From Thalia democratica (Eukaryota), in NCBI GenBank assembly GCA_965202585.1, contig OZ241831.1, positions 37,014,001 to 37,078,000 of the forward strand: a DNA stretch of 64,000 nt. Direction: 5' to 3'. Below are positions 2,060-60,364 of the stretch, piece by piece. The translations under genes and the position numbers were made by a program. How positions within the stretch are numbered: the stretch's first letter is position 1; each line of letters begins with the position of its first letter. The notes under the pieces were generated by a model. The model worked only from the letters and a program-made list of their open reading frames with translations, was not told where the DNA came from and did no database searches.

Positions 2060-2876
2060 CTAATAAGGACTATAGGCAGTTTTCTTTTTTTTATTCATAG
2101 AGCTTTTTGCTTTACCTCCCGAATTGTTCGAATAGCTCGGCTCATTGTTAGTGTAGCCACCGTACCCATCTAGTGCACCTCCGTAACCGCCATATCCAGT
2201 GTACAGCGACTCATCATAACTGGCAGTGGTTGCTGTTGGGTAACCTCCATTGTCTGCATAACCTCCGTACCCCGTTTGATAAGCAGCTTCTGCGGTCGTT
2301 TTTACTTTAATTTCTTGTTTTGATGTGGTGACTGAATACTTGCACTCGCATCTGCTACCGTCGACCATGTGATATTGACCCGCCGACAAGGTTTCATTGA
2401 TTCCTTCGGGACTTCTGAAATAAATAAAACAAAAGCCGCGGGATTTTCCTGTTCCAGGATATGTTGGCCTCCTGTACTTTGTAATTGTTCCATACTTTCC
2501 AAAATACTCTCTGATGGTTTTCTCATTTGTATCAGGTTTTATACCACCAATAAACAATATTTTTTCTTCCTCACTATTACTTTTTTGAGCTTGACGAAAA
2601 GGGTCAAATTTTTTAGGGTCAATCTTTTTACCGTCAAGTACGTGAGAACGTTCTTTTAGCACTCTGTCTACGTAGCGAGGAAATTCGAAAAGAACAAAGC
2701 CGAAGCCTCTCGAAGCCTTGTTAACCAGATGCCTTTTAATTTCAACATCTACCACTGTTCCGTATTTTCCGAATTTTTTTTTTTAGTCTGCGCTTGTCTG
2801 TTTCCGGTGACAATCCTCCAACGAATATTTTGCAGTTTTTCTCTTTGCTTTCTCTAACAAGTTTGCCGTACTCCAT
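2060..2876 (-). CDS. Intronless RNA-binding protein with two RRM domains and a Gly/Tyr-rich tail (hnRNP A/B/D - Musashi/DAZAP1 type), about 271 aa after repairing a 1-nt frameshift
   Basis: ORF 2060-2755 has RNP1 motifs RGFGFVLF and RGFCFIYF, RNP2 LFIGGI, a GYGG-rich tail and a C-terminal ...YSPY. An upstream ATG at 2876 reads MEYGKLVRESKEKNCKIFVGGL (RNP2 of RRM1). It joins the ORF if one A is removed from the 11-nt A run (plus-strand T run 2774-2784), giving RLKKKFGKYGTVVDVEIK. Confidence 0.88.
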
Positions 2877-5403: not shown

Positions 5404-6752
5404 TTCCTTCTGTTTACACAGTTCTGGTTTCTCCAAAAATATAGAGATAGCCTCCAACTTCACGAGATCAAACACACTATTGCAATGATGAATTATTCTA
5501 AATCTGGATATGTCATATTTCCTAGCACAATCTCTATTATTTATTAGATGTTCTGCAACTGAAGATCTTTTTGCTGCGTTTTTTGTTGCTATTGTCTTAA
5601 ATTTCAGGTTCTTGTTCGATGAATTTCAATACACAAGCAGGTAAATGTTCTTTTATCCTGGTTTTAAAGTGCCTAGAGGTCTGACCGATATAGCTCTTTT
5701 CGCAAGAGCAACAAAACTTGTATACTACACTACTTTTGTCTTGGTCTGGTATCGGGTTCTTCAACTGCACTTTTAACAAAAATTTAAAAAGAAATATAAC
5801 TCTTGGAAGCACTTGATTGTAAGATGTTTTTGTTAAGTCTTTTAGTTTGCTCTCAAATGCTAGTGATTTTCTCCAATATAAGGTAGTTTTATTATTGCTG
5901 GGAACTTCTCCGGTCCAAATAGCCTAGGTTGATTTATGTTATTGTGGTGTGATTTTATCACCTTCGTAATCAAATCTGGTGGGTAACTATTTTTTATTAA
6001 AATTTCTTTTATTCTCTCAACCTCTGAATGAAGTAATTCTTTCGAACAGATTCTGTATGCTCTATGGCACAGCGTTTTGATTAGGTTTACTTTTCGTTTC
6101 TTACTACAAATCGATTGGTAGTGTAAGTATTGCCCAGTGAAAGTTTTTTTTCTATAGACATTCGTTAAGAAGCTTGTTTTATCTTTTATTATTAATTTAT
6201 CCAGAAATGGCAGCTGGTTGTTCTCTTCTACTTCTCTAGTAAAAGAAATCTTTTCATGTATAATTTTGAATAATAGCTTCATTTTCACTTTCTGTTTTGG
6301 ATATAACCAAACAATCGTCGACGTATCTTATGTAGACAACCTGTGAAGACAAGTCGTCAGTAATTTTGGATTATAAATATCCGATAAAAATATTCGCTAG
6401 AGTAGGACCCAAAGGTGACCCCATGGCTACGCCGTCTATCTGACTGTAAATTGTATTATTGAAATTAAACTGTACATCACTCGTTGCTATTTTCATCAGC
6501 TTTATAAAATTGTTCTTCTCTAAATTAGGTATTCTTATTTCATATAATTTGTCAGCACTTATCTTAATTGATTCTTCTAGTGGTACATTTGTGAACAATT
6601 GCTTTACGCCAAAAGATGTTAAAACTGTATTAGTTGATGTAGCATGTCTGATCTTTTCGATAACTTCAAAAGAGTCTTTTACAACAAATTGTGAGTAATA
6701 AGCTAAAACTGGTTCTAATAAAAAATTAAGAAATCTGGCTAATTTGTGTTGT
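5404..6752 (-). pseudogene. Fragmented PLE reverse transcriptase and GIY-YIG endonuclease
   Basis: Motifs QIDGVAMGSPLGPTLANIF, YIRYVDDCLV, LPFLD, VYRKKTFTG and CSCEKSYIGQTSRH are split across frameshifted ORFs 6371-6598, 5860-6288 and 5597-5812. Confidence 0.88.
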
Positions 6753-6907: not shown

Positions 6908-7507
6908 TTGATTAAGAAGGTGATAAAATCACACCACAATAACATAAATCAACCTAGGCTATTTGGACCGGAGAAGTTCCCAGCAATATTAAAACTACCT
7001 TATATCGGAGAAAAATCACGAGTATTTGAGAGCAAACTAAAAGACTTAGCAAAAACATCTTACAATCAAGTGCTTCCAAGAGTTATATTTCTTTCAAAAT
7101 CTTTATTAAAAGTGCAGTTGAAGAACCCGATACCAGACCAAGACAAAAGTTGTGTAGTATACAAGTTTAATTGCTCTTGCGAAAAGAGCTATATCGGTCA
7201 GACCTCTAGGCACTTAAAAACCAGGATAAAAGAACATCTACCTGCTTGTGTATTGAAATTCATCGAACAAGAACCTGAAATTAAGACAATAGCAACAAAA
7301 AACGCAGCCAAAAGATCTTCAGTTGCAGAACATCTAATAAATAATAGAGATTGTGCTAGGAAATATGACATATCCAGATTTAGAATAATCCATCATTGCA
7401 ATAGTGTGTTTGATCTCGTGAAGTTGGATGCTATCTCTATATTTTTGGAGAAACCAGAACTGTGTAAACAGAAGGAATTTGACTATAAAGTGTCTTTATT
7501 TAGTTAA
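6908..7507 (+). CDS. 5'-truncated PLE ORF: RT C-terminal linker plus GIY-YIG endonuclease
   Basis: 199-aa open frame with VVYKFNCSCEKSYIGQTSRHLKTRIKEH (GIY-YIG). No RT core upstream on this strand. Confidence 0.8.
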   Translation: MIKKVIKSHHNNINQPRLFGPEKFPAILKLPYIGEKSRVFESKLKDLAKTSYNQVLPRVIFLSKSLLKVQLKNPIPDQDKSCVVYKFNCSCEKSYIGQTSRHLKTRIKEHLPACVLKFIEQEPEIKTIATKNAAKRSSVAEHLINNRDCARKYDISRFRIIHHCNSVFDLVKLDAISIFLEKPELCKQKEFDYKVSLFS

Positions 7508-10144: not shown

Positions 10145-10900
10145 TATGGGTCACCAAAAATTCATTAAGAAAACATTCCTTTGATGCCCATTTTCTGTAT
10201 GGTAAACTATGCACATTATAAATTTGTTCGTTGATAAAATCAGAGGCATCGAAGCAAATAATAAATTATTGCGTCGTTTTTTATTGTATCGTTATACGAG
10301 GTCATTGAACTTTTGTTGATACATTGTATAAGTTAAGAAAACCTACAATAAAAAATATGAATTAAAAAATTCTTTTGAAGCTTGCAACTTCTGGCGTTAA
10401 GTTTAGTTCTAATTCTTTAATGTATTCACAGCAAGACGGTAGCCATGGGCACCCTTTGGGACCGCAATTGACTAATATTTTTATGGGTTATATTGAGATA
10501 AAAATTATTTCTCCTTTCAAAAACAAACTATTGTACCTCAAGTATGTTGATGATTGTGTTGTGTTGGTCAGAATCGGGAAATTTATCTATGAATGTCATT
10601 TTTATAGCTTGAATAATGCTCAAAACTCAATCAGTTTTACAATGGAAAAAGAAATATTAATGAACTTAAATTTTTAGATGTACAAGTTAGACGAGAAGAA
10701 AATAGATTTTCAAACATCGGTGTATAGAAAGATAACCTATGCAGGTTGTTATTTGAATTTACAATCCAACTGTAGATTAAAGAAAAAAGATAATCTAATC
10801 AGAAATCTGTGTCATCGTGCACCTAAAACTTGATTCGCATAGTTGCTACTAAGTAAAATCAAAAGGATCAAGTTACTATGAAATAAAACCGGGTACCACA
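10145..10900 (+). mobile_element. Degenerate Penelope-like RT fragment
   Basis: Degenerate motifs YGSPKIH.ENIPLMPI, MYSQQDG..GHPLGPQLTNIFMGYIE, LKYVDDCVV, NFLDV and VYRK with stops and frameshifts. Confidence 0.8.
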
Positions 10901-12808: not shown

Positions 12809-13096
12809 NNNNNNNNNNNNNNNNNNNNNNNNNNNNNNNNNNNNNNNNNNNNNNNNNNNNNNNNNNNNNNNNNNNNNNNNNNNNNNNNNNNNNNNNNNNN
12901 NNNNNNNNNNNNNNNNNNNNNNNNNNNNNNNNNNNNNNNNNNNNNNNNNNNNNNNNNNNNNNNNNNNNNNNNNNNNNNNNNNNNNNNNNNNNNNNNNNNN
13001 NNNNNNNNNNNNNNNNNNNNNNNNNNNNNNNNNNNNNNNNNNNNNNNNNNNNNNNNNNNNNNNNNNNNNNNNNNNNNNNNNNNNNNNNNNNNNNNN
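12809..13096. other. Assembly gap (N run)
   Basis: 288 N bases. Confidence 1.
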
Positions 13097-31944: not shown

Positions 31945-34900
31945 TCAAAACCAACCTTGCTGAGCGATCTGACTTCCATAAAAGTTATTCGCAGATACCA
32001 TTGAGCTGTATGGATATACCGATGAGTGATTACTTCTTGATGTAGAAGAAGATAAATCTAAAACTCCTGGTTGAACTACAGAGTAAGGTTGTTGTTGATA
32101 ACCCGAAACATACTGCTGAATTTGTTGATTGTAGCTGCTAGGTGGCGCGTAAGAGGCCTGTTGGTAATTTTGGAACGACTGAGGATCGTAAACTGATGAG
32201 TTATTATATTGAGGATTGTAAACTTGGGGATTGTAAACTTGTGGGTTGTGGAAAGCCGATGGCTGAACAGGAGTAAAAGCCGATGGTGCTTGTGTATCCA
32301 TATTCTGTTTATAAAAACAAAAAGTATAACAAAATTTTATATATTTAAAGGTAAATTTATTTGAAACAATGTCTAATTTCTTAAATTTTTTTATAGACAA
32401 ATTTTTCGCTTGATTAAACTTATTTTTTCTACATCTCAACATAAAAAACAGTAGTAAAACAAGACAAAAAACCAATTCAAAGTTTTTTTTTATCTGTTAA
32501 CTATAAGCTAAATTAATAAATTACTGTAAAGCACTTTATAGTATGAAACCATTATTAACATTTTCATTATTAATATTAACATATTTTCTTTATTCTTTAA
32601 CCTTAAGTAAAATACTAGTTTTAAAAAATTTTAGATAGGAAATATATTTGATATCTTTTTTAAATTATTGCTTTAAAAACAGGACGAAAAATTCTAAATA
32701 TTTGTTTTTCAAGAATAATCAAAATTAGTTAAAACTTCTTATTCAAAGTAAGTATAGTTTAAAAACTAGTTGACTATTTTGAAAACAAAACTTGTAAATT
32801 TACTTAAACAAATAAAAAATTCACTTAAGTTTCTAAACTGAGTCAGGCTGTATTAGCTTATTTTAAAGTGTGTTTTAAATTAAAAATTATTTATAAAAAC
32901 ATTTCTAACTTGTGCTGTAAACCCATAAGAAGCTGTTTTCGATTTATCTTCAACTTTCGGAGCAAAATATGTGTTATTCCGTTGCTGATTGTAACTGGTA
33001 ATTGGGCTGCTATATTCTTTTGACAAGAAAATTTTTAATAATGTAAATAATTTTTTAAGAGTGTATATATTTTTGCAAATAGAAATTACTAGTTTAGTTA
33101 GTTTTAGAAAATGAAGATTTTTTGATTAACATAGACAAAGTTTATTGAATAACTAAAAATTACAGCGACAACAAAGTTTTAATATGTACAATTGTAAATA
33201 ATATTTTTTAATCAATTTTTACAAGATATTAAACTTATTTTAAACACTTAATTATAGGTAGCATACTTGACCTTTTATGTTTTAACTTCTTAGTTTTAAA
33301 GTATTTTAACACATGTTACTCTAATTTAAAATAAGCTTCAACTAATGTCTGAATAAACTATGAAACATTTTTGTTTATTTACACTAAACTAAAACTAAAT
33401 TGTTATTTTTAAAACCGTGTATTAATTATTACTGAAGTCAAAAATTAACAACTTTTCTAATTTGATTTTAGAAATTTCTATCAATCATGTTGATTTAAGT
33501 TATTAATCGTTATAAAAAATAATTATAGTTCTATTGACAGTCGTTTATATTGATTAAGGAGATTGAATTTAAATATTAAATAAGTTTAGCTGTAATTTAT
33601 AAAGGTTTTCTATAAAATACGTTTAATCTTTGCTTCTTTTAAACAAACTTATGGCATTTGTGATACATTTAATTCTTACTAAAACTTAAGTAAAACTTAA
33701 ATTGAAAGTAGGAACTATAAAAGATTTAGTACATTATATATGAAATCAATATAATGAACTAACTATATTACAACAAGTACAAAAGACTAACTGCTTTTTG
33801 GTCGTAAAATTTTAGGTAAGGTATGACTGTAAGACTGTGGTTGATCTAAAGTTGACATGGTAGCTGAAAAGTTAGGATAAGAATTTGCATCCGGAGTCAT
33901 TACTTGACCTGACATCTGAAAAGATTGCCTTCCTGAAAAGTTAGTTAAAGCCTGGTCTTGTAAATCCAGACTACTCAAAGTTGCAGGGTTTGAACTAAGT
34001 TGGGAAGAAGGATTTATTTGATCAAATTCATCTATATTGTCAGAATCACTTAAGAGAGAACTATTTCTTTTTTGGTAGTCTTTGTATAAAGGATTATTTG
34101 GGTTTAGTACGTTGCCTACTTTTTCACGCAAAATCCTGCTAACAGAAGAAACAGAGGGGACGTTGTGTAGATCACAAACTCCATCGGTGAGCAACCGGTC
34201 CCTAATTTCCCTCGCGAATATTGCAGGGTCTTCGACTTTGTAATCTGTTATCTTCTGTACGACTACAGGGGTCGTTTTTCTCGGCTTGCTGCCCCCAACT
34301 GTACCTGGAGCTATACTTCCAGTTTCGTTGAACCTTGATAATATCTTGCTGACGCAACCGTGGGACACCTTCAGTTTTCGACTGATATTGCAGGGCTGCA
34401 CGCCTTGTTTGTAGAGATCAACTATTTTCTCCCGAGTGTCGTGCGGTAGCGGACGGCCGTTGTAGAAAAGTCCCCCTAATTGATTCATTTCTGCATAGCC
34501 ATCAACTGTAAAAGAAGTTTACTAAATTTAAAGAATAAAGCATGAGTTACAGCGACTGAATATTAATTTCGATAATAGTAATGATTGCTAATAAATAATT
34601 TAATACAGTTCTATATCAATTTTTTAACAAAGCTGTGTTTGGTCTTAACCGCTTAAAAACCATTTATACTCAAGCATCTTTATAAATCATGTATATAGAT
34701 AAATTACTTTTTACATGAAAAACTTTAATCTTTTTCTCAAATGTAGCTTGAAACTTTCTATTGTTTCAAACTGACAATTGAATTGACAGCTGCATGTAGT
34801 TTAAACTACTAGAATTTTTATTAACTCGATACTTTTCACCTGTGAAAAATTCAACACTTTTTTTACAGCTTTTACAATGAAATCAACCGAAACGAAATAA

Positions 34901-42255: not shown

Positions 42256-44033
42256 TTATACCAATAACTTGATGAGAAATAGAGAAGCAGTTAGAGTTGG
42301 CTGGTGTTCAACTTGAGCGGTTCGAAGTAGATCAGGTGGAAATTGAGCAGGTGGAACTTGATTGTGTTTAACATCAGGAAGTTGATTTTCAGGATGATGA
42401 AGTCGTGTAGGTGGATGTTGAGTACTTGGAAAACTAGTTGGTAAACTTTATCTAAAAATAGGACGACTTTTTGATGAGTTAACCGAAAAATCTAGAACTC
42501 CTGGTTGAAATTCAGGATGTGAAAGTGGATGTTGAGCAGGTTGTTTAGAATATGTTTGCTGTTGGTAACTTAAATCACTTTGAGTTGTTTCCCGCAGTCT
42601 TCCGCCTCCCTGTTTCCCTGGGGCGACATGTCCGGTTTTTTTGAACCTTGATGAGTTTTTACTGACTCCTCCGTCAGACACCTTGAGATTGTGGCTGATG
42701 TAAGAGGACCTCTGTTGCTATGTTGGAGGTGTTCGACTATTTTCTTTTGGGTATCGACCGGTAGAGGACGGCCGTTGTGATAAACTTCACCTAACTTGTT
42801 CACATCTCCATCGGTATTAACTAAAAAAAAGAACTTAAAGATTATCGCAGTTTATCTAATCATCTTTCATTCATAGGAGTTGTTGTTTTATATTTACAAC
42901 ATTAAATGCAATGGTTTAATAAATCTCATGGTATTCGTCTAATCTAGTTAAACTTTAAAAATGAATATTGTTATTATGTGTTAGCTTATGTATATAATTA
43001 AAAACAAGTTTCTCAGGAGATTTTTTTTCAATTTTAACAAAAATATTTTCATTAGTGGTTTAAGTCTTTACTTTGAATTTTAAATCAGTTTTAGTTTAAG
43101 TGAAACTTGCGAAAACTTTAAATATTTAAAATTTTAATAACTTGTTACTTTTTACCTTGAGAGTAATCAAACATTTTTTTGTGATTTTAATCATGAAAAC
43201 AACCGAAGCAAAGTCATACCTACTTCACAGTGCAAACTTAAATGACGTTTTTTTTTATTCTTTCAAATTAAAAATTCTGTATATCAAATTAAAATACATT
43301 TTGTTTAAGTACATTTATTTAAAGTTGAGCAATAAGCAAAAAAAAATCACAATACCTCTAAAGTTTTTGAAAAAAGTAAGGTTTATTGAACGCATAATTT
43401 AAATAACTTACTTACTATACATTAAATATTCGATAAATTAATACTTGAGTGATTTAAGTTTTAGTATGTACTAAGTAGTAAATTTAAGTTTTTAATTTAT
43501 AGAAAAGTATGTTTGTGTCTAAACATAAAAATTATTTTTTGTTCTTGCAATATAATTTAACAATATAACTGGTTGATAAAGTGGTTAAAGAGTAACCAGT
43601 CAATATCTAAAAAAATTATTTTTCTGCCTGTTTTTGATCAGTTTTGTGAGCAAGTATTAACTATTTGATAAAAATAAAAACTGAGTAGTTTTTAAATAAG
43701 TCATAACTTTTAAAACTCCTTTGTTTTATAAAATGCAAATTTCATAAGTACGTTTATCAAGTTTTTGACTTTAAAAAAGTTTATTAGCTAATGTAAACAC
43801 AAGAATTACCAAGATTTAACACATGAAAACAAATAAAATTTTTAATTCATCTTTATATTTTTATTGGGCAGAGTAGAAGAACAAACTTATTGCTTTTAAT
43901 GTATATTTTTACAGTTTCAAAAGAAATAAAATAAATCTACCTACTTCTATTATTAAAAAAAAATATTTATTAAATAATTATATATAGATGTATAACAATT
44001 TTTACCTTTCGATGCTTCATTCCCTGAACTCAT
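42256..44033 (-). pseudogene. Pax paralog (array copy 3): N-terminal (PAI) half of the paired domain fused to the Q-rich tail; frameshift and nonsense codon
   Basis: Exon 44006-44033 (MSSGNEASK) and acceptor at 42820. Reads VNKLGEVYHNGRPLPVDTQKKIVE, then a 2-nt (AG) insertion near 42710, then ISHNLKVSDGGVSKNSSRFKKTGHVAPGKQGGG joined directly to YQQQ...QPGVLDFS. TAA at 42448-42450 lies inside sequence homologous to copy 2 (TQHPPT..HPENQ..DVKHN). Confidence 0.85.
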
Positions 44034-46616: not shown

Positions 46617-49600
46617 TTAATCTATAACATTTATATCAGAACTAGACGAATGAGTTTGATTTGGCTTATGTATAACATGAGCAGGTGGAGTTTGAGCAGG
46701 AGAAACATGACCAGGTAGAACTTGAGCAGGTAGAGCTGGATTATGTTTAACATCAAGAGTTTGATTTTCAGGATGTTGAACCAGAGTAGGTGGATGTTGA
46801 GTATGTGGAAAATTAATAGATGAGCTTTGTATAAAATTAGGACGACTTCTTGATGACTTAGCAGATAAATCTAGTACTCCTGGTTGAATATCATGATATG
46901 GAGGTGGAAATTGAGCAAATTGATGTTGAGAAGATCTATGTTGAGCAGGTTGACATTGAAATTGAGCAGGTCGACGTTGAGCAAATTGATGCTGAGCAGA
47001 TCTATGTTGAACATGTTGAAATTGAGCAGGTCGACGTTGATCAAATTGATGTTTAGCAGATTGAAATTGAGCAGTTTGAAATGGAGCAGTTTGAAATGGA
47101 GCATTTTGAAATGGAGCAGTTTGAAATGGAGCATTTTGAAATGGAGCAGTTTGAAATGGAGCAGTTTGAAATGGAGCATTTTGAAAATGAGCAGATTGAA
47201 GTAGAGCAGATTGAAGTTGAGCAGAAAGATGTTTAGCAGGTTGAAATGGAGCATTTTGAAATTGAGCAGATTGAAGTTGAGCAGATTGAAGTTGAGCAGA
47301 TTGAAGTAGATAAGGTGGAAGTAGAGTAAGTAAGGTTTGTTGTTGGCAGTTTGAAGCATACTGTAGCATTTGTAGAAGTTGAGTGTAGTTGCTTGGTGGC
47401 ACAAGAGGATTTTGATTGTAATTTTGAAACAACTGAGGATTGTGAAGAGCTGGTAACTGATTTGAAGTAGATGGAGGTTGTTGTGTTGTCATCAACTGTA
47501 ATGTTCAAAAATAAAAATTACAAAGATTTTACTAGAGTTAAACCGTTACAATAAACAAATTTCTGTTAAATTTAAAATTTTAATTTAGAGTAAGTGAAAA
47601 AATACAGAGTAATGATTAATTTAGATAAAATCATTCTTATACTATTTTTTTAAAGATTTTACCTTTTAAAAAGTTTAGAAAAACGCTTTTTTTTTATTGA
47701 TATATTTATTTACTTAAAACTATTTTTGTCACCTTGATACTATAAAAATTTCATAGAAAAAAACAAAAAAAGTTTATTCAAATTGAAAATTTTAATAGAT
47801 TTCTTTACAACTCATTAGAAACCTAATAAGTGGATAACGTTTGGAAATCTGAAAATAACTATTTCATCTAACATTTTAATAGTTATGACTATATATTTTA
47901 TTTTTCATTTAAAATAAGTAAAACTGAGTTCTATTTATACTCGTTTTTCAATCACGATTTAAAACTAGTAAACTGTTTTGCTAGATGATTGTAGTAATAT
48001 TACAAGTAAATTAATTATTCAGACGTGCACTTTAGCTTATAGAAACAGTATTAACTTGCGACCCATAAAACCTTGTTTTCAGTAGATCCTCTCTATTTCG
48101 AGAAACGTTTGTGTTGTTCGGTTGCTGATTGTAACTGGTTGTTGGTCTGCTATAACCTAGGTAATTGAAGTTAATTTTTACTGTCTAAAATTCTGATAGT
48201 AACAGATTGTTACTTTTTCAGAAAAGTTTTTCAGAATACGTAGTTTAGACATAATACAACAGCATAAACAAATCTTATTGAATTGTAATTGTTTACAGTA
48301 AAAAAAATTTAAGTAAAAATAAATACATATTTTATTAAGTTTTTGAAAAATATTAAATAAAATACGTTTAAATATTTTACACTAACATTTTTTAAATATT
48401 TTAACATAATAACAATTAATAACTAAATTTTATAGAATGTGAACTCAACTACTTTTCTAAAAATATAGAATTTCTATTTATCATGTATACTTTATATTAC
48501 ATAATTTTAAGTAAATAGAATAAAACTTAAAATCCTGTATTAATAGTATAGTATGTTTAAGTTCATATTTTAAAACTGAATTGATATTTTTTCGAAAGGT
48601 AGCTAAAATGTTTCAGCTAAAACTAGTTTTTAAATTTTCATAAATAAAATAACAGTTAAAAACTTGCAAAATAATATATTTTTAATTTGTTCTATTTTAA
48701 TTTAAACAGTAGTTTTACTTAAGTAAATATAGAAAGACCTGAAGTTGTCCTAGTAGGTGAAATATTATGATCGGAGGTGGGAACCATTTGACCTGACTTC
48801 TGAGAAGATTTAATTTTTAATAAACCAGTCGAACTGACGTCATTCTCGTTCCGTTTATTATGTGCTAAACCTCTTGAAATTACCCGGTCTGGTCTTTGAT
48901 GGAAAGAAGGAGTCATGCTGTTTAACTCGGCAAAACTGTCAGGGTCACTTACTAGAGAACTATTTCTGTTTTTAAAGTGTTTGTTCACAGAATAATCAGT
49001 TTTCAACTCGTTGCCTGCTTTTACACGCAATAAATTGTCATTAGAATTTATAAATGGGACATTGTCATAAGCACCTTTACCAACCAACTGTTCCTTGTCC
49101 TTCTTAACTATTCCTTCTTTTATCTTCTGCATGACGCTTTGGTTCAAAACTCTCGGTTTGCTCTTTCCCACCTTCCCTGCAAGGATACCTCCGGTCTTTT
49201 TGTGTTTAGACAAGTAATTATCAGTGGTACCGCTGGATACATCGAGAGTTTTTCTGTTTTCAACCTCCGTCTTGCCTAGTTTGTTAAGCTCAACTGTCAT
49301 ATTTTGAGTTACTTCTGGTATTTTACGGCCCTTGTTAGAATCTCCACCAAGTTTTTTCACTTCTTTATCGGATTCAACTAAAATACCATATTTAGGTTAT
49401 TACAGTTTATCAAATAATCATTTCGGTCATACAGGTGATTGTTAAGTTAGATTCAAAAGTTAGTGTAACAATTGAATTAATGGTTTTCATTTAAAAAATA
49501 ACTAATAAGAAAAACTCGTAAATAAAAATATAAATTGTAGAAAATGCTGTTATGCTAATAACTTATGTAATTATCTATGAACAATTTTATAGACAGAAAT

Positions 49601-50627: not shown

Positions 50628-51860
50628 TTTTTCATTTAAAAGTGTTAATTCTATATGATTTACAACAATTTATATAGCATAGCTTTCGAACTTGTGTTTG
50701 AATAGATTGTTAACATTTAATATTCAAAATTAAATTAAAAAAGTAGAACAAATCATTTTATTAAGTTTTCTGAAACAACTAGTTAAGTTCGTTAATAGTA
50801 TTTCTTTAATTCAAACCACTGATTAAAGCTTTAAAAATTAATTGTAATTTCAGTTTCTTTTTATGACAATCATTTTTTTTTGCAGTTAGTTAATATTAAA
50901 TGGTGGAAAAAACCATAACTTTTATTTTATATTGCTTTTAAAGCAGTTTTGAAAAAAATTTTTTACTAAAATTTTTACTTTATAAAAAAAAAGTTTATAC
51001 TGAAAATTATCTTATCTTTTATAAACAAATTAGTTTTTATTTTAACGCATAAAACTGAATAATCTAAAACGAAAATTGTTTAAATTCAGATAGTAATTAA
51101 AGCCTTACAATAAGAATTTAATTTTTTATTTTGAATATTAAGAATTTACATCTTCATTTGAGATAAATAAAAATAGTTTTAATTTAAGCCTTTTTATGTT
51201 ATTCAGATTTTTAAATAAAGTACAAAGCAACATTAAAATTAAACTACGGTTATACTTATCATAACTATAAGACACTAACTTTACTGACTTTTTATTCGAA
51301 TAAAGATGTACTGGACATATTATGTTTTTTTTACAGGTTAAATAAATAGTTACTATAAGTGATTAAAAAAACAAACTTAGTGCTTTTATTACATACTTTT
51401 CAATGCTAGCAAACATTCAGAATAATGTTACGTATTTTTAGTCTAAAAACAAAATAAAATGTATTTATTAAGTTATAACATATATGCTTTCTGGAAACGG
51501 GTCACTTTTGCACGGCGTCACTTTTGCTCGGTGACATTTTTACACGTCAAAACTTTTTCACGACGTTAGATTTGCATGGCGACATTTTTGTAAAGCGTCA
51601 CTTTTGCACTGCGTTATATTTTCACGGATAAACTTATGAACTGTATAAATTTTTAAATAATCAGTAAATTTTGAACGGAACCTCACTTTTGCACGCTTCT
51701 AATTTGTATTTTCTCATGTTGAAATTAAATTATTTTTTTGTCAATTTAAATAATATTCACTTTTAAACAAAAGTTATTTTGAATGAATAAAATTTGGTAG
51801 TTTTTTAATGAAATTTTAAAATAAAGTTTTTATAAATTTATTCTTTAAAGAATTAAATTT

Positions 51861-51897
51861 ACAAACTCAGTTTCGGTCAAAGACCACGTAAGTGCTC
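51861..51897 (-). ncRNA. Degenerate copy of the second hammerhead family (core destroyed)
   Basis: Minus strand reads AGCA-CUUACGU-GGUCUUUGACC-GAAAC-UGA-GUU-UGU. Stem II and GAAAC match 28451-28479, but the CUGANGA core is mutated. Confidence 0.55.
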
Positions 51898-53394
51898 AAA
51901 TAAAGTTCATAAAATAAAGTTTTTATTTGACCTTTTACGTAGAACAATACTTTAACGTACCACAATTCATTAATTTATATTTATAATCATAGTTTAAATA
52001 AACTAGATGAGCACACATTTTCTAATTTTAAATAAAAACAATTTTGTATACTTTATATAAAAACAATCTCAATGTCGTTAACTTTTAAACGGAAAGATAA
52101 AATTAATTTAGTAAGACTTTAAAACAAAAATCTTGAGTATTATTTTTTACTTATATTCTCTTGATGTTATAATTAGCATTATATAGTTGTTAAAAATGTT
52201 TTAAATTTATTTTAGTTTTAAACATATATTATATCAAATTAAAAAAGATTTAGTTAGTTTATGAAGTTTTAAGGTATTTCAAATTTTACTAGATATTTAT
52301 TAATTTTTATTTTTAAACTTAGCGTGACAATAAAAAAAGCAATAAAGTACCGCATTTTCATGATTACACTTGGATTATTTCATTACTATAATGTTGCATG
52401 ATCATGATAAGCCGATGAGAGAGTAACGTTTTGAAGTTTGAACTTATGTTCAAATAAAATATGCAATATTAGTCTTCAACCGCTGAAATATTCCAATAAT
52501 GAGGCTTGGCAGAATTCTTTTTTTTTCATCAGTCAGTTGAAATATGGAACAAGCTACCAAATAAATTAGCAAAATTTTAAAAAATTTCGATTAAAGTTAA
52601 GTTTTGTCTGAATTATATTTGTGTTAGTAAAATTAATTAGTGATTTTTATCAACCATTGATTTAATTTCAAAATTTAGCTTAGTTTATAGTTCAACTTTT
52701 CAGCAGAAACTTTACTCTATTAATAATGAGTCATTTTTCAATGTATTTAATGGTTATTCATCTGGCCAGGCTATTGTTAATGTCCTTGCAGCGTTAGGTG
52801 TTAATTTTTGTTTTTAGTCAATACAGTTAAATATTAAATGTCGATCGTTCTTACTTTAAAGCGTAAATAAGTATAAATTTCTGGTTAAAATTTTGCTTTT
52901 TATGTTAACCTATAAAATTTATATCAAATTGTTTTTTTATATTTGTTTTATTAAAAAAAACTATTTGTGTTTATTCTTTTTTTTTTATGTGTTTTTCAGT
53001 TTAAGTGGTCTAGGTTTTGGTGCCTAGGTCCATAATACGGACAATAAACTTGTAGACACATAGTAAAATATATAAAAAGGCATAGCTGTTGATTAATATA
53101 CTAAAGTTCAAAATAAACTAGAACAATTCACTTACTATTGAAGTATTTTTTTTATCCTAGTTTCTAAATAAATTAAAATTTTTGTCCCTGGTATGAGTCT
53201 TTTTTAAATAATTTTATTTTATACTTTCGTTAGTTTGTTTCAAACATAAACTTTTTCTGTTTAAGATTTTGAATCTTTCATTATTTTCTTTTAGTATAAG
53301 TATATTATAAAATTTTATTTTTCAGTTTCTTTTTATCTTACAGATTTGATACTAACTAAAAAATATCAACCAAAATGCAAAATTGATGTTCCGT

Positions 53395-53885
53395 GCAAAA
53401 AAGTCATCGTGCGAAAATTTCATCGTAATAATGTGACGTTGTGCATAAAGTATCGTTGTGCAACAATGCTACCGTAAAAGTTGACATCGTGAAAAATGTC
53501 GCTGTGCAAAAATTACCCTGCGTGCAAAAATGACCATGCGTGTAAAAAATTCTCCTGGTGCAAAAGTTAGGTCGTGCAAAAGTGTCCTGTCGAGCAAAAG
53601 TGACCGTCCGTGCAAAATAAACGCCGTGCAAAAGTGTCCCCTCGTGCAAATGTGACCCTCCGTGTAAAAGTGACGCAGTTCAAAAGTGTCATCTCGTGCT
53701 GAAGTGACGCTCGTGCAAAAGTGACGCCGTGCAAAAGTGTCCCCTCGTGCAAAAGTGACCCTGCGTGCAATAGTGACGCCGTGCGAAAGTGTCCCTTCGT
53801 GCAAAAGTGTCCCTTCGTGCAAAAGTGTCCCTTCGTGCAAAAGTGTCCCCTCGTGCTGAAGTGACGCTCGTGCAAAAGTGACACC
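53395..53885. repeat. About 15-16 bp tandem subrepeat array (right arm of the foldback element)
   Basis: Repeated CGTGCAAAAGTG(A/T)CC units; explains the four overlapping spurious ORFs. Confidence 0.92.
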
Positions 53886-56912: not shown

Positions 56913-57924
56913 AATGAGATTAATTATTTAAATGTACTATTATCTATAAAAACTCAATAGTATTTGTAAATTAAAATGATATTTTTATATAACATCAAGA
57001 CAGATAAACGAGATATTTTTTTCTACTAATTAAAACTATTTAACTCTATATTTACATTAATTTTTCTTGCAACATAAATGTCAATATTGTTTACTATTTA
57101 TTTAATTACTTTAAACTATTACAGCTAACTTATTTAAAGTCAAAAAATTGAAATATTAAATCAATGTTTTATAATGTCAAAGCTTAAACACTTTGTATGC
57201 ATTTCCTATTAAAACTTGTTATTAAAACCTGCAACAACAATGTATAGAATTAACTATAGTTTCTTGTTAAATATAATAACTATGTTTAATTATAATATTA
57301 AATTATATAATTTTGTAATATAATATTGTGTTCAAGCGTCATTTTTAGCATTTTAAAACAACTATTTAGCAGCTGAATTGTTTTATAATACTTATTAACT
57401 ATTATATATCTAATATTGTGCATCTTTGGTTACACCTAAATACATCTTTTCTTTTGAAAGTCTTAAGTATCGAAGTTTTGTTGTAAAAGAAACTTATTTA
57501 TTATTTATTTACAATTTACTTAGCAGTTCTTACAGCACTTAATTATCAACTTACTTATTTACTTCAGTAGTTAAGTACAACCGATTAAGCCTTATAATTT
57601 TTTTTTGAAAGCTTAAAAGAAGTAGATAAGAAATATTAACCACAATATGTTTCTAAAACTATAACTATGATCAAAAACTATAAAAGCAGACTCAGCCAAA
57701 TACTTATATTTAAAGACATTAAGGTTATAATTTTTTTTTAGTATTTGTGAAGATTATAATAAAAATTATAAAAAATCAGTGGTTAAAAATTAAGTAAATT
57801 ACTATCTGTTTCTGCAAGTAATACTTCTACTATACATTCACAAACTTAAAAGCCTCTTTTCAACATGTTTTATTATATTTCATCAGTCCTTATAAGAGTA
57901 TTTACTATCCCTGAGTAAATTTTT

Positions 57925-58494
57925 CTAAGACCTGTCACCGGGTTCTGTTTCCTGGCAGTTGGAGTCGATGGACTTGCACAGGGACACGTCGCACTGGACG
58001 ACGACTTCCTCGGTTGCCCCGTCATCTTCCTTCACCTCCTCCAAGGTCACCTCGTTACAAAGGCACTCGAAATCCGCGCCTCCCATCTCCTCCTGGCAGC
58101 ACTTCTCCTTCTCCAGCAGCTCGTACGCGATCTCCTGCTGCCACATCTGCTTCTGCAATCCAGATCTGTACTCCCTGAATATCTTCAGAGGCTCAACGAC
58201 GCTCACCACCGACAAAACTGTGGCGCCCAAGAGCTTGGCGTCGCGGCTCTCGAAGAACTGCTGGGCTAAATAGGCCGAAGCCAATAAGTTTGTTTTGAGG
58301 ACGAAAGGGGAGTAGTTGGGCTCCTTCCTGGCTTTCCTGGTGCCCATGAACAGGACCCCGGCGCACGCCATCATCGTGCCGGTTGTCAGGTCGTCTTCCC
58401 CGCTGACGTAGCTTCCGACGGCCAGACACGCGATCCCGGTGGAGCACAGGACGGACAGCATCGAGGTCTCGCTACCGGCGTTTAAGATGGACAT
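57925..58494 (-). CDS. Intronless GC-rich orphan ORF, 189 aa, hydrophobic N-terminal half and acidic Cys-containing tail
   Basis: Start context AAAAATG. About 55-60% GC in sampled lines versus very AT-rich flanks; 34 of the first 40 codons end in G/C. No family recognised. Confidence 0.72.
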   Translation of the reverse strand: MSILNAGSETSMLSVLCSTGIACLAVGSYVSGEDDLTTGTMMACAGVLFMGTRKARKEPNYSPFVLKTNLLASAYLAQQFFESRDAKLLGATVLSVVSVVEPLKIFREYRSGLQKQMWQQEIAYELLEKEKCCQEEMGGADFECLCNEVTLEEVKEDDGATEEVVVQCDVSLCKSIDSNCQETEPGDRS

Positions 58495-59665
58495 TTTTGA
58501 TATAAACTTGTACTACGGTTAAAATAAAAAATACAAAAACTTAGATTTCATTTGCTTGATTAACTAACACAATAGAGTTTATTTTCAAAAAAAATAAAAA
58601 TTTCTGCAACAAGTTTGCTGACGTAATAATTGTAAAGTTAATTTATCGCTAGGATATTTTTAAACTATTTACATTCACTAGAGATAAGCATTATAATGCA
58701 TTATTTCTGTAATACAGCTATTAAGACAGTATATATGTCTTAATAACTTACGTGTGTAAACCAAACACAGACAAAAAGTTAGTAAAAGACGGAAAATCGT
58801 TAAAGTATTATACGATTGCATATACTCACTGTATTTGTATCTATTTTCATTTAAACTTTGTTGTTTTTATAAACTTTACCTACTATTTTAACCGGATTTG
58901 AATAAACCTTTATTAATTGCTGGTGAAAAAGCATGATGTAATATTGTTTTACTACTTTAAATGCAGTATTAATTGGTGGTGAAATCAAATAAAAAGTGAT
59001 TTGATCAACAAAATAAAACAACTAATCTGCAGCGATATAAACCCAATATTACGTAAATTATTTGTAAAATTTTATATTTTATACTCTTATTTATATGTCC
59101 TTATTTAGGTAAAAAGTTGTTATACTATTTTACACACTAAAAATCTTTATGCAAACATAGACACCCTTTAAACACTAACTAGCCGTAAAAGTTTTTCGAA
59201 AAATAAAACAAATAACAAATATTTTGTTTGATTAGATAAACTCAAAAAAGAAATACTTTAGTAACTTAATCATATTTCTTTTATTCTCTTTTTTTTTGTA
59301 AAGAAGAAAATTAATGTGCTTTGTAATTTTAACATCAACAACTTTTTTAAAATAGAAGTGATTAAAATATGTTTTAAAGTAGCGACATAAACTAATGACA
59401 ATTATTTTGCAAAAAAGCATATGTAATGTACTTTTTATTAGTGGAACCCAACCAAACTGTTTTTATAGCTTAAAATAACAAACCAAAGTTTCTGATTCAT
59501 TTTTATTACTAATACATATTTTATGAATAATTATAATCAAAATTGACCTAAACTCGTCGTTTACGTATTTTCAAATATAATTTAAGTTTTTTTATTAAGT
59601 TCGCTTAATATGATTATATCGGGCCCTTTTTCCTTTTAAAGATCCGATAGTTAAAATGGGACACG

Positions 59666-60364
59666 TTCAAAATCCACCCGCAATCAAAATCCACCCGGGT
59701 TAAAATCCACCCGATAAAAATCCACCCGGTTCAAAATCCACCCGGGTCAAAATCCACCCGATCATAATCCACCCGAGTCAAAATCCACCAGAGTCAAAAT
59801 CCACCTGTTCAAAATCAACCCGGTTCAAAATCCACCCGATCAAAATCAACCCGGTTCAAAATCCACCCGATCAAAATCAACCCGATCAAAATCAACCCGA
59901 GTCAAAATCCACCCGATCAAAATCAACCCGGTTCAATATCCACCCAATCGAAATCCATCCGAGTCAAAATCCACCCGATCAAAATCCACCCGATCAAAAT
60001 CAACCCAGTTCAAAATCCACCCAGATCAAAATCAACCGTATCAAAATCAACCCGGTTTAAAATCCACCAAATCAAAATCCACCCAATCAAAATCAACCCA
60101 GTTCAAAATCCACCCGATCAAAATCAACCCGGTTCAAAATCCACCCGATCAAAATCCACCCAGATCAAAATCAACCGTATCAAAATCAACCCGGTTTAAA
60201 ATCCACCAAATCAAAATCCACCCAATCAAAATCAACCCAGTTCAAAATCCACCCGATCAAAATCAACCCGGTTCAAAATCCACCCGATCAAAATCCACCC
60301 GGTTCAAAATCCACCCGATCAAAATCCACCCGGTTCAAAATCCACCCGATCAAAATCAACCCGA
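59666..60364. repeat. Minisatellite, about 15-16 bp unit CAAAATC(C/A)ACCCG(AT/GTT)
   Basis: About 700 bp of directly visible tandem units, with higher-order repetition near 60000-60260. Confidence 0.95.

Follow-up and report, generated by a model that had tools for sequence, protein, structure and literature searches.

The gene described here is a resident, vertically inherited gene of its host, whose coding sequence is strongly GC-rich from the start codon to the stop codon while the DNA on either side is extremely AT-rich. We put the probability at about one in two that this state results from selection on the GC content or codon choice of the coding region, acting on one paralog of a lineage-restricted family. 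The window (the entire stretch of 64,000 nucleotides analysed) has a GC content of 0.26. The gene, the two sections of its protein product and the conserved sites around it are as follows:

57925 to 58494, minus strand: single-exon gene with a complete ATG-to-TAG frame of 189 codons plus stop
58090 to 58461, minus strand: residues 12-135, predicted four-helix bundle and long fifth helix, the section conserved across the family
57928 to 58089, minus strand: residues 136-189, a tail rich in acidic residues and Cys, with predicted disorder
58619 to 58630, minus strand: upstream 12-mer ATTATTACGTCA, 125-136 nt before the ATG, with no other exact copy in the window
58546 to 58557, minus strand: conserved block AAGCAAATGAAA in the putative 5' leader, holding an upstream ATG at -57
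57869 to 57874, minus strand: AATAAA, 51 nt past the stop codon, probable poly(A) signal

The core of the upstream 12-mer, TTACGTCA, lies between -125 and -169 from the ATG in all four orthologs and is a candidate bZIP (CRE/ATF-like) promoter site. The upstream ORF opened within AAGCAAATGAAA is short and varies in length between the orthologs. The AATAAA hexamer occurs at the aligned position in one of these (L006); if it is indeed the poly(A) signal, the resulting 3' UTR of about 70 nt is AT-rich.

The ORF has a GC content of 0.579 (0.52, 0.40 and 0.82 at the first, second and third codon positions; hereinafter GC1, GC2 and GC3), as against 0.21-0.24 in the adjoining 1-kb flanks. When the region is divided into 30-bp bins, all flank bins remain at 0.17-0.33 up to both codon boundaries, with the last one at 0.23 on the 5' side and 0.27 on the 3' side, versus 0.53 in the first and last coding bins and a range of 0.40-0.67 across the coding sequence. 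The first 15 codons already have a GC3 of 0.87 and the value stays flat along the ORF. This step at the start and stop codons is present in three taxa, and both the putative 5' leader and the 3' UTR as far as the AATAAA are at 0.2-0.3 GC. Other coding ORFs in the window have a GC3 of 0.35-0.38 (Pax, 0.38; an RRM protein, 0.35), the median for all ATG-initiated ORFs of at least 60 codons is 0.37, and a GC3 similar to that of the gene recurs only in its own antisense shadow ORF. Thus, the compositional description given by a prior sequence-only reading, namely a GC-rich frame in AT-rich flanks, a switch at the start and stop codons and AT-rich third positions in the neighboring coding ORFs, is borne out in full. 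A single dip in GC3 (0.60) stems from codons 67-79 (58294-58257, minus strand), where A/T third positions (AAA ACA ... GCT ... TAT) are kept in all the GC-rich orthologs and the DNA is near-invariant even in the AT-rich one, possibly reflecting a constraint at the nucleotide level. Two minisatellites flank the gene and explain the other GC bumps nearby: one lies 1.2 kb upstream (59667-60364; a 15/31-bp unit, with about 22 copies of the 31-bp unit and a strong skew of C over G) and the other 4 kb downstream (53558-53882; a 17-18-bp unit).

Several simple accounts of such a GC-rich island find little support. A search for terminal repeats and target-site duplications around the ORF returned only short AT-rich chance matches, in keeping with the prior statement that no transposable element ends are visible. 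Origin as a processed retrogene is not supported: neither a poly(A) tract nor flanking direct repeats were found at the ORF, and the units of this family are normally single-exon. An Rfam scan of the whole window gave no match. The ORF folds no better than its shuffled versions, if anything worse (z = +1.35 and +2.19), which makes selection for RNA structure an unlikely cause of the high GC.

Close relatives of the encoded protein were recovered as three protein clusters, all from Tara Oceans marine metagenomes and all full-length, with identities to the window protein of 94% (P0001/P0129/P0130), 80-82% (P0002) and 72-73% (P0003). The genes occupy orthologous sites in three other taxa, represented by contigs L001/L021/L022, L006 and L002-L005. 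The most extensive evidence comes from L021, a 4233-bp marine metagenomic contig of a sister taxon, which is colinear with window positions 59291-56066 across both junctions, with 85-89% identity over a segment that takes in 0.8 kb before the ORF and 1.8 kb after it. For L006, 360-400 bp upstream and 250-300 bp downstream align with the window at a p-distance of 0.29-0.34 and a score far above those of shuffled sequences. Overall, the flanks can be aligned with those of the window in L001, L021 and L006, and weakly or partly in L002; within each taxon the set of flanks is uniform, so that all contigs of a taxon represent one locus. The colinearity with L021 stops at window position 59291 at a 95-bp dispersed repeat (L021:1007-1101), which in the sister taxon lies upstream of the gene and of which the window has an 82% identical copy at 51824-51916.

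These shared loci bear directly on the suspicion that the island is an assembly artefact, in which a contaminant fragment was fused to host DNA. Nothing beyond the compositional step speaks for it, whereas several Tara Oceans samples, assembled independently (Logan, SPAdes, MEGAHIT and a co-assembly), yield the same ORF in AT-rich flanks, and L021, which extends 1.8 kb to each side, spans both junctions. Since a wild sample of independent origin thus has the GC-rich ORF between the same AT-rich flanks, the chimera raised as a caveat in the prior reading is excluded for practical purposes, and we assign this explanation next to no probability. The orthologs also establish that the ORF is a real gene, as had been proposed from its intact frame, because they are full-length and their dN/dS values are 0.29-0.40, indicating a moderate selective constraint.

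Beyond the close orthologs, when 1.84 billion representatives were searched exhaustively with HMMER and a profile search was added, just two further groups emerged, giving six protein clusters in all, which come from eukaryote-fraction marine metagenomes or from transcripts with AT-rich flanks. The first group, paralog B, comprises proteins of 240 aa (P0007, from the same sample as L006) and 249 aa (P0128, from the same sample as L001), which are 22-27% identical to the target across the N-terminal domain. The flanks of paralog B diverge by 0.22-0.25, which is near the divergence of the target locus between the same two taxa. The second, more distant relative (P0004) is exon 1 of a 581-aa two-unit protein of a less AT-rich organism (L007:104-2288, L023:113-1858), which gene callers had cut into ORFs of 286, 30 and 265 aa. 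Here, the JGI contig L023 equals the genomic contig L007 minus about 430 bp, corresponding to an intron between the two units, each of which is one exon. This splice of about 430 bp, along with the common 5' ends of L012 and L017, identifies the JGI contigs as transcripts; hence, expression is established for both paralog B and the distant relative, and every unit of the family corresponds to one exon. As the intron of the distant relative lies between its units, the intronless state is the normal one for the family. For paralog B, transcripts of two species start at virtually one genomic point, to within a few bases (L013:2150-2250 and L008:370-473), right after a T-rich run ending in GCAG and about 80-100 nt before the ATG; this conserved 5' end would be either a start site or a trans-splice acceptor. 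The JGI set contained no transcript of the target gene; these are bulk plankton assemblies, from which expression limited to a stage or tissue could escape.

Searches further afield returned no additional members. A pattern of degenerate codons for a conserved 9-residue motif matched just three unrelated GC-rich contigs. Weak HMMER matches to long, apparently bacterial proteins with a repeated motif (P0005 and P0006; E-values between 1e-4 and 1e-5, summed over 6-10 repeats) were judged compositional; they are restricted to about 25 residues of helix 1. Pfam scans of five members (the protein and its relatives), as well as scans against NCBIfam and PHROGs, gave nothing above threshold, a sequence-profile search of the PDB was non-significant (E = 2.8), and no relatives were found in viral contigs or prokaryotic genomes. 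The prior description of the gene as an orphan is therefore accurate with respect to these sets, and what emerges is an uncharacterised gene family confined to a group of abundant marine zooplankton.

The combined picture argues strongly against the recent horizontal acquisition of an exact coding sequence from a virus, symbiont or prey, which the sequence-only reading had offered as one of its two explanations. The sole point in favor of such an event is the compositional contrast, i.e. a GC3 of 0.82 against 0.35-0.38 in neighboring genes and 0.22 GC in the flanks. Against it, the locus, its junctions, its flanks and the upstream motif are common to three other taxa; one ortholog and a paralog have host-like codons; the distant relative has an intron; mobile-element ends are absent; and no homolog was found in any viral, prokaryotic or other non-animal source searched. 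We accordingly regard this scenario as extremely improbable. Its companion explanation, an unusually codon-biased host gene, fared better: orthologs in related taxa have a similar GC3 (0.83 and 0.76), an observation which the same reading had itself named as telling against transfer. A false candidate for horizontal transfer is thereby removed, and composition alone, even with codon-exact edges, is no sign of foreign origin in this case.

The distribution of GC3 across the family indicates what has changed and where. It is 0.82 in the window, 0.83 in the sister taxon (L001/L021) and 0.76 in L006, as opposed to 0.35 in L002-L005, whose flanks are equally AT-rich; paralog B has a GC3 of 0.25-0.28 and the distant relative (L007/L023) of 0.34-0.35. 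For all family members from AT-rich genomes, the flanks have a GC content of 0.18-0.28, mostly about 0.21-0.26; as background, copepod genomes are reported to have about 30% GC (PMC6505139), while a literature search on copepod codon usage gave nothing useful. We interpret the GC-rich state as a derived trait of one paralog in part of the clade, the alternative being a single loss in L002. On the branching order, two lines of evidence differ: a neighbor-joining tree of the proteins places L002 beside the window species (95% bootstrap), whereas by flank similarity L006 is the closer one. We give the flanks more weight than the protein tree because the L006 protein is fast-evolving and GC-driven: its amino-acid replacements relative to L002 are GC-biased (34 up and 9 down) and its dN is raised.

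The same conflict has been weighed in connection with another scenario, in which the resident coding sequence was swapped, in the ancestor of the window species, L001 and L006, for a GC-rich homolog, e.g. from a GC-rich genome or a virus, with the conversion tracts ending where homology ends, at the borders of the coding sequence. Such an ancient replacement would account for those exact borders, for the wholesale difference from L002 (78 of about 145 comparable synonymous third positions have G or C in the window and A or T in L002) and for the discordance between the protein tree and the flank similarities. However, the rapid, GC-driven change of L006's protein also accounts for that discordance, the donor copy is absent from every collection searched, and the GC3 would need later upkeep anyway, such that the maintaining force could also have created it. 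We consider this replacement highly unlikely.

That such a maintaining force exists is apparent from the substitution patterns. We counted mismatches between strong (S; G or C) and weak (W; A or T) bases per site at synonymous third positions and in the flanks, and compared the two by Fisher tests. Between the window and L021, the rate per G/C site is 0.043 at third positions versus 0.34 in the flanks (p = 4e-12), and between the window and L006 it is 0.26 versus 0.94 (p = 1e-12). Per A/T site the order is inverted, with 0.20 in the coding sequence against 0.10 in the flanks for L021, and 0.96 against 0.29 for L006. In other words, a G or C at a synonymous third position is swapped for A or T 4-8 times less often than one in the flanks. 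The third positions of paralog B (0.45 and 0.14) are nearer to the flanks than to the target. When the window is compared with L006, S/W differences are equally frequent in the two directions (13 each way), and 7 sites have C and G exchanged; hence, exchange between S and W proceeds at a flank-like overall density, and it is the equilibrium that is inverted. When the differences between the window and L001 are polarised with L006, five third positions changed from S to W and one from W to S, a number too small to interpret. The GC-rich state is actively maintained and is not decaying despite an AT-biased genome of about 75% A+T, which excludes a passively ameliorating import. If equilibrium and a mutation bias equal to that of the flanks are assumed, the population-scaled bias would be about ln[(0.82/0.18)/(0.22/0.78)] = ln(16) = 2.8, which is at the upper end of the values for codon selection or conversion bias in animals.

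We propose that this paralog ancestrally had ordinary AT-ending codons, with a GC3 of about 0.35, and that in the clade formed by the window species and two sampled relatives it would have shifted to G/C-ending codons (0.76-0.83), as sampled in this paralog only. The shift would then have been held by a fixation bias that ends at the start and stop codons, and its likeliest cause may be selection acting via translation or the coding part of the mRNA, be it through codon optimality, mRNA stability or the GC content of the ORF. Two patterns expected of codon selection were observed: the bias is limited to the translated region, with the step at both boundaries in three taxa, and fixation is biased relative to neutral neighbors in two comparisons (Fisher p of about 1e-12). 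We infer that the fixation bias represents selection; that the force ends at the start and stop codons, with an AT-rich leader and 3' UTR, implicates translation or the coding part of the mRNA.

Nevertheless, several observations stand against this selection. First, there is no sign of high expression, the JGI set having transcripts of paralog B and the distant relative and none of the target. Second, G- and C-ending codons are favored as a class, without fixed preferred codons: the window has a preference for GTC and GCC, and L006 for GTG and GCG; NCG codons are common, the CpG observed-to-expected ratio being 0.9-1.0; and the effective number of codons (ENC) is 40 versus the 44 expected from GC3 alone. 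This pattern is unlike classical tRNA-matched selection. Third, the GC-biased replacements in L006 are more typical of biased gene conversion or of pressure on GC itself. Fourth, dS is not reduced, being 0.55 between L001 and L006 as opposed to 0.29 for paralog B and 0.37-0.46 for the flanks. These difficulties leave some room for a process that respects the borders of the ORF and also drives amino acids towards GC, one that falls outside both classical translational selection and ordinary biased gene conversion. It might take the form of a translation-coupled or ORF-templated repair or conversion, or of strong selection on ORF GC tied to a lineage-specific change in mRNA handling; we think it quite unlikely that a process of this kind is responsible.

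Much of what sits uneasily with selection is what GC-biased gene conversion would produce, either at an allelic recombination hotspot with the gene at its center or ectopically among dispersed copies that share only the coding sequence, the latter being the model proposed for the mammalian histone and Hsp70 genes. The general bias for S-ending codons, the swapping of C and G between lineages, the lack of CpG avoidance, the GC-biased replacements and raised dN of L006, the unreduced dS and the lack of evidence for high expression would all accord with it. However, the effect of an allelic hotspot should grade into the neutral flanks, and the gene instead goes from a GC3 of 0.87 in its first 15 codons to a GC of 0.23 in the adjoining 30 bp, with such a border in three taxa. 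Ectopic conversion, in turn, needs further copies, whereas we find one locus per taxon, one copy in the 64-kb window and no elevation of contig coverage (9.2x, as against 17.8x for the contig of the paralog in the same assembly). Gene conversion in either form is hence an unlikely explanation, and selection on the coding region remains our preferred reading.

For the encoded protein, AlphaFold gave an unusable model with only four sequences (pLDDT 40), whereas with seven sequences AlphaFold2 gave a good one for residues 10-120, with pLDDT values of 80-89 over residues 10-110 and below 50 from residue 132. The predicted helices span residues 13-30, 35-57, 59-83 and 86-97, followed by a fifth at 100-135. 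Hydrophobicity is strong in helices 1 and 4; helix 3 is amphipathic, and helix 2 contains 16 consecutive residues without charge. The four hydrophobic stretches perceived in the sequence-only reading are partly borne out: four helices (followed by the long fifth one) are predicted, but the mean Kyte-Doolittle value exceeds 1.6 in only two of them, at about residues 12-30 and 88-106. Its E/D- and Cys-rich tail is confirmed, with 15 E, 6 D and 7 C in residues 116-189. Four tail cysteines are invariant among the four orthologs (C144, C146, C173 and C180), with the invariant C132 just before them, at the end of helix 5. The N-terminal four-helix domain is probably membrane-embedded, and these features would fit a small membrane protein with a cytosolic acidic tail that is possibly metal-bound or lipid-modified. 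In Foldseek searches of the PDB and of viral models, the matches were all to generic helical bundles, with E-values of 0.076 or worse; the best fold match, synaptogyrin (8a6m), is non-significant (E = 0.2; TM-scores 0.40-0.47). Membership in the MARVEL/synaptogyrin, TMEM14 or Romo1-like families was considered and is unsupported, Pfam having returned none of these and neither the PDB profile search nor Foldseek having given a significant match.

The remainder of the window contains several other features. Three tandem copies of a Pax paired domain are present on the minus strand: the copy at 33787-34488 is an intact 233-aa ORF with the entire paired domain uninterrupted by an intron, that at 42448-42803 is spread over two frames and looks broken, and that at 48719-49360 is divergent but still matches the Pfam PAX model (E = 2e-10). 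The prior reading had assumed a cnidarian host; however, the intact Pax ORF matches unnamed marine contigs first and then the crustaceans Petrolisthes, Procambarus, Portunus and Amphibalanus, with no cnidarian among the best 120 matches; a planktonic crustacean is a tentative guess for this marine, very AT-rich host. Downstream of each Pax copy is a Q/P-rich ORF (31945-32475, 46617-47495 and 42448-42681, all on the minus strand) with a common motif, QPGVLD[LF]S; these are probably second exons of the Pax genes, and the second of them, 46617-47495, is built of internal repeats and has a GC3 of only 0.075. Retroelement remains occur at 5860-6288 (minus strand), 6908-7507 (plus strand) and 10375-10677 (plus strand), including two ORFs in opposite orientation that have a near-identical peptide stretch of about 33 residues in common. 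A weak GIY-YIG match in one of these two and a weak reverse transcriptase match in a further ORF, both below the Pfam thresholds, suggest a Penelope-like element. An ORF at 2060-2755 (minus strand) is hnRNP-like, combining an RRM domain (Pfam RRM_1, E = 3e-18) with a Gly/Tyr-rich tail; its GC3 of 0.35 was taken as a reference for host codon usage. Positions 12809-13096 are a run of 288 N, either an assembly gap or masked sequence.

On the quite unlikely reading that a process outside both standard mechanisms is responsible, more than half of the synonymous sites of a single-copy and apparently not highly expressed gene would have been recoded, and its GC3 would be kept at about 0.8 against a genomic GC of about 0.22. 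The system constitutes a natural contrast for the study of the forces acting on synonymous sites, as between lineages whose genomes are equally AT-rich this gene, at an unchanged locus, has a GC3 of either 0.35 or about 0.8, with an AT-rich paralog as an internal control.

Finally, parallels to this gene can be drawn with several known systems, none of which it matches throughout. At the protein level, it resembles small tetraspan or four-helix-bundle membrane proteins: its four antiparallel helices are rich in small residues, two being clearly hydrophobic, and a tail of cytosolic appearance follows them; unlike members of such families, it has no significant fold match (Foldseek E of 0.2 or worse) or Pfam match. 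With horizontally acquired animal genes it has in common the lack of introns, a deviant composition and the absence of annotated homologs, and it differs from them in having syntenic orthologs, an ortholog and a paralog with host-like codons, a distant relative with an intron, and no donor. The mammalian histone and Hsp70 families and mouse Fxy, a gene of the pseudoautosomal region that is grouped with those shaped by biased gene conversion, are alike in their very high GC3, GC-biased amino-acid change and undiminished substitution rate. Histone and Hsp70 genes are intronless too; here, however, there is no second copy seen with which to convert, and, in contrast to Fxy, the non-coding DNA beside the coding sequence is not enriched at all. 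A further parallel is the classical selection on synonymous sites in Drosophila and Caenorhabditis, which leads to G/C-ending codons in the coding sequence only: as in those codon-biased genes, the bias is restricted to the translated region, favors G/C-ending codons for nearly every amino acid and is kept against the mutational bias. Unlike them, the present gene shows no evidence of high expression, no fixed preferred codon, an ENC only slightly below expectation and an unreduced dS, and both its sister-lineage ortholog and the paralog in the same genome are without the bias. Thus, as a codon-usage outlier the gene belongs to a kind already known, and it is the degree of the bias, the contrast between lineages and the poor fit to the standard mechanisms that set it apart.
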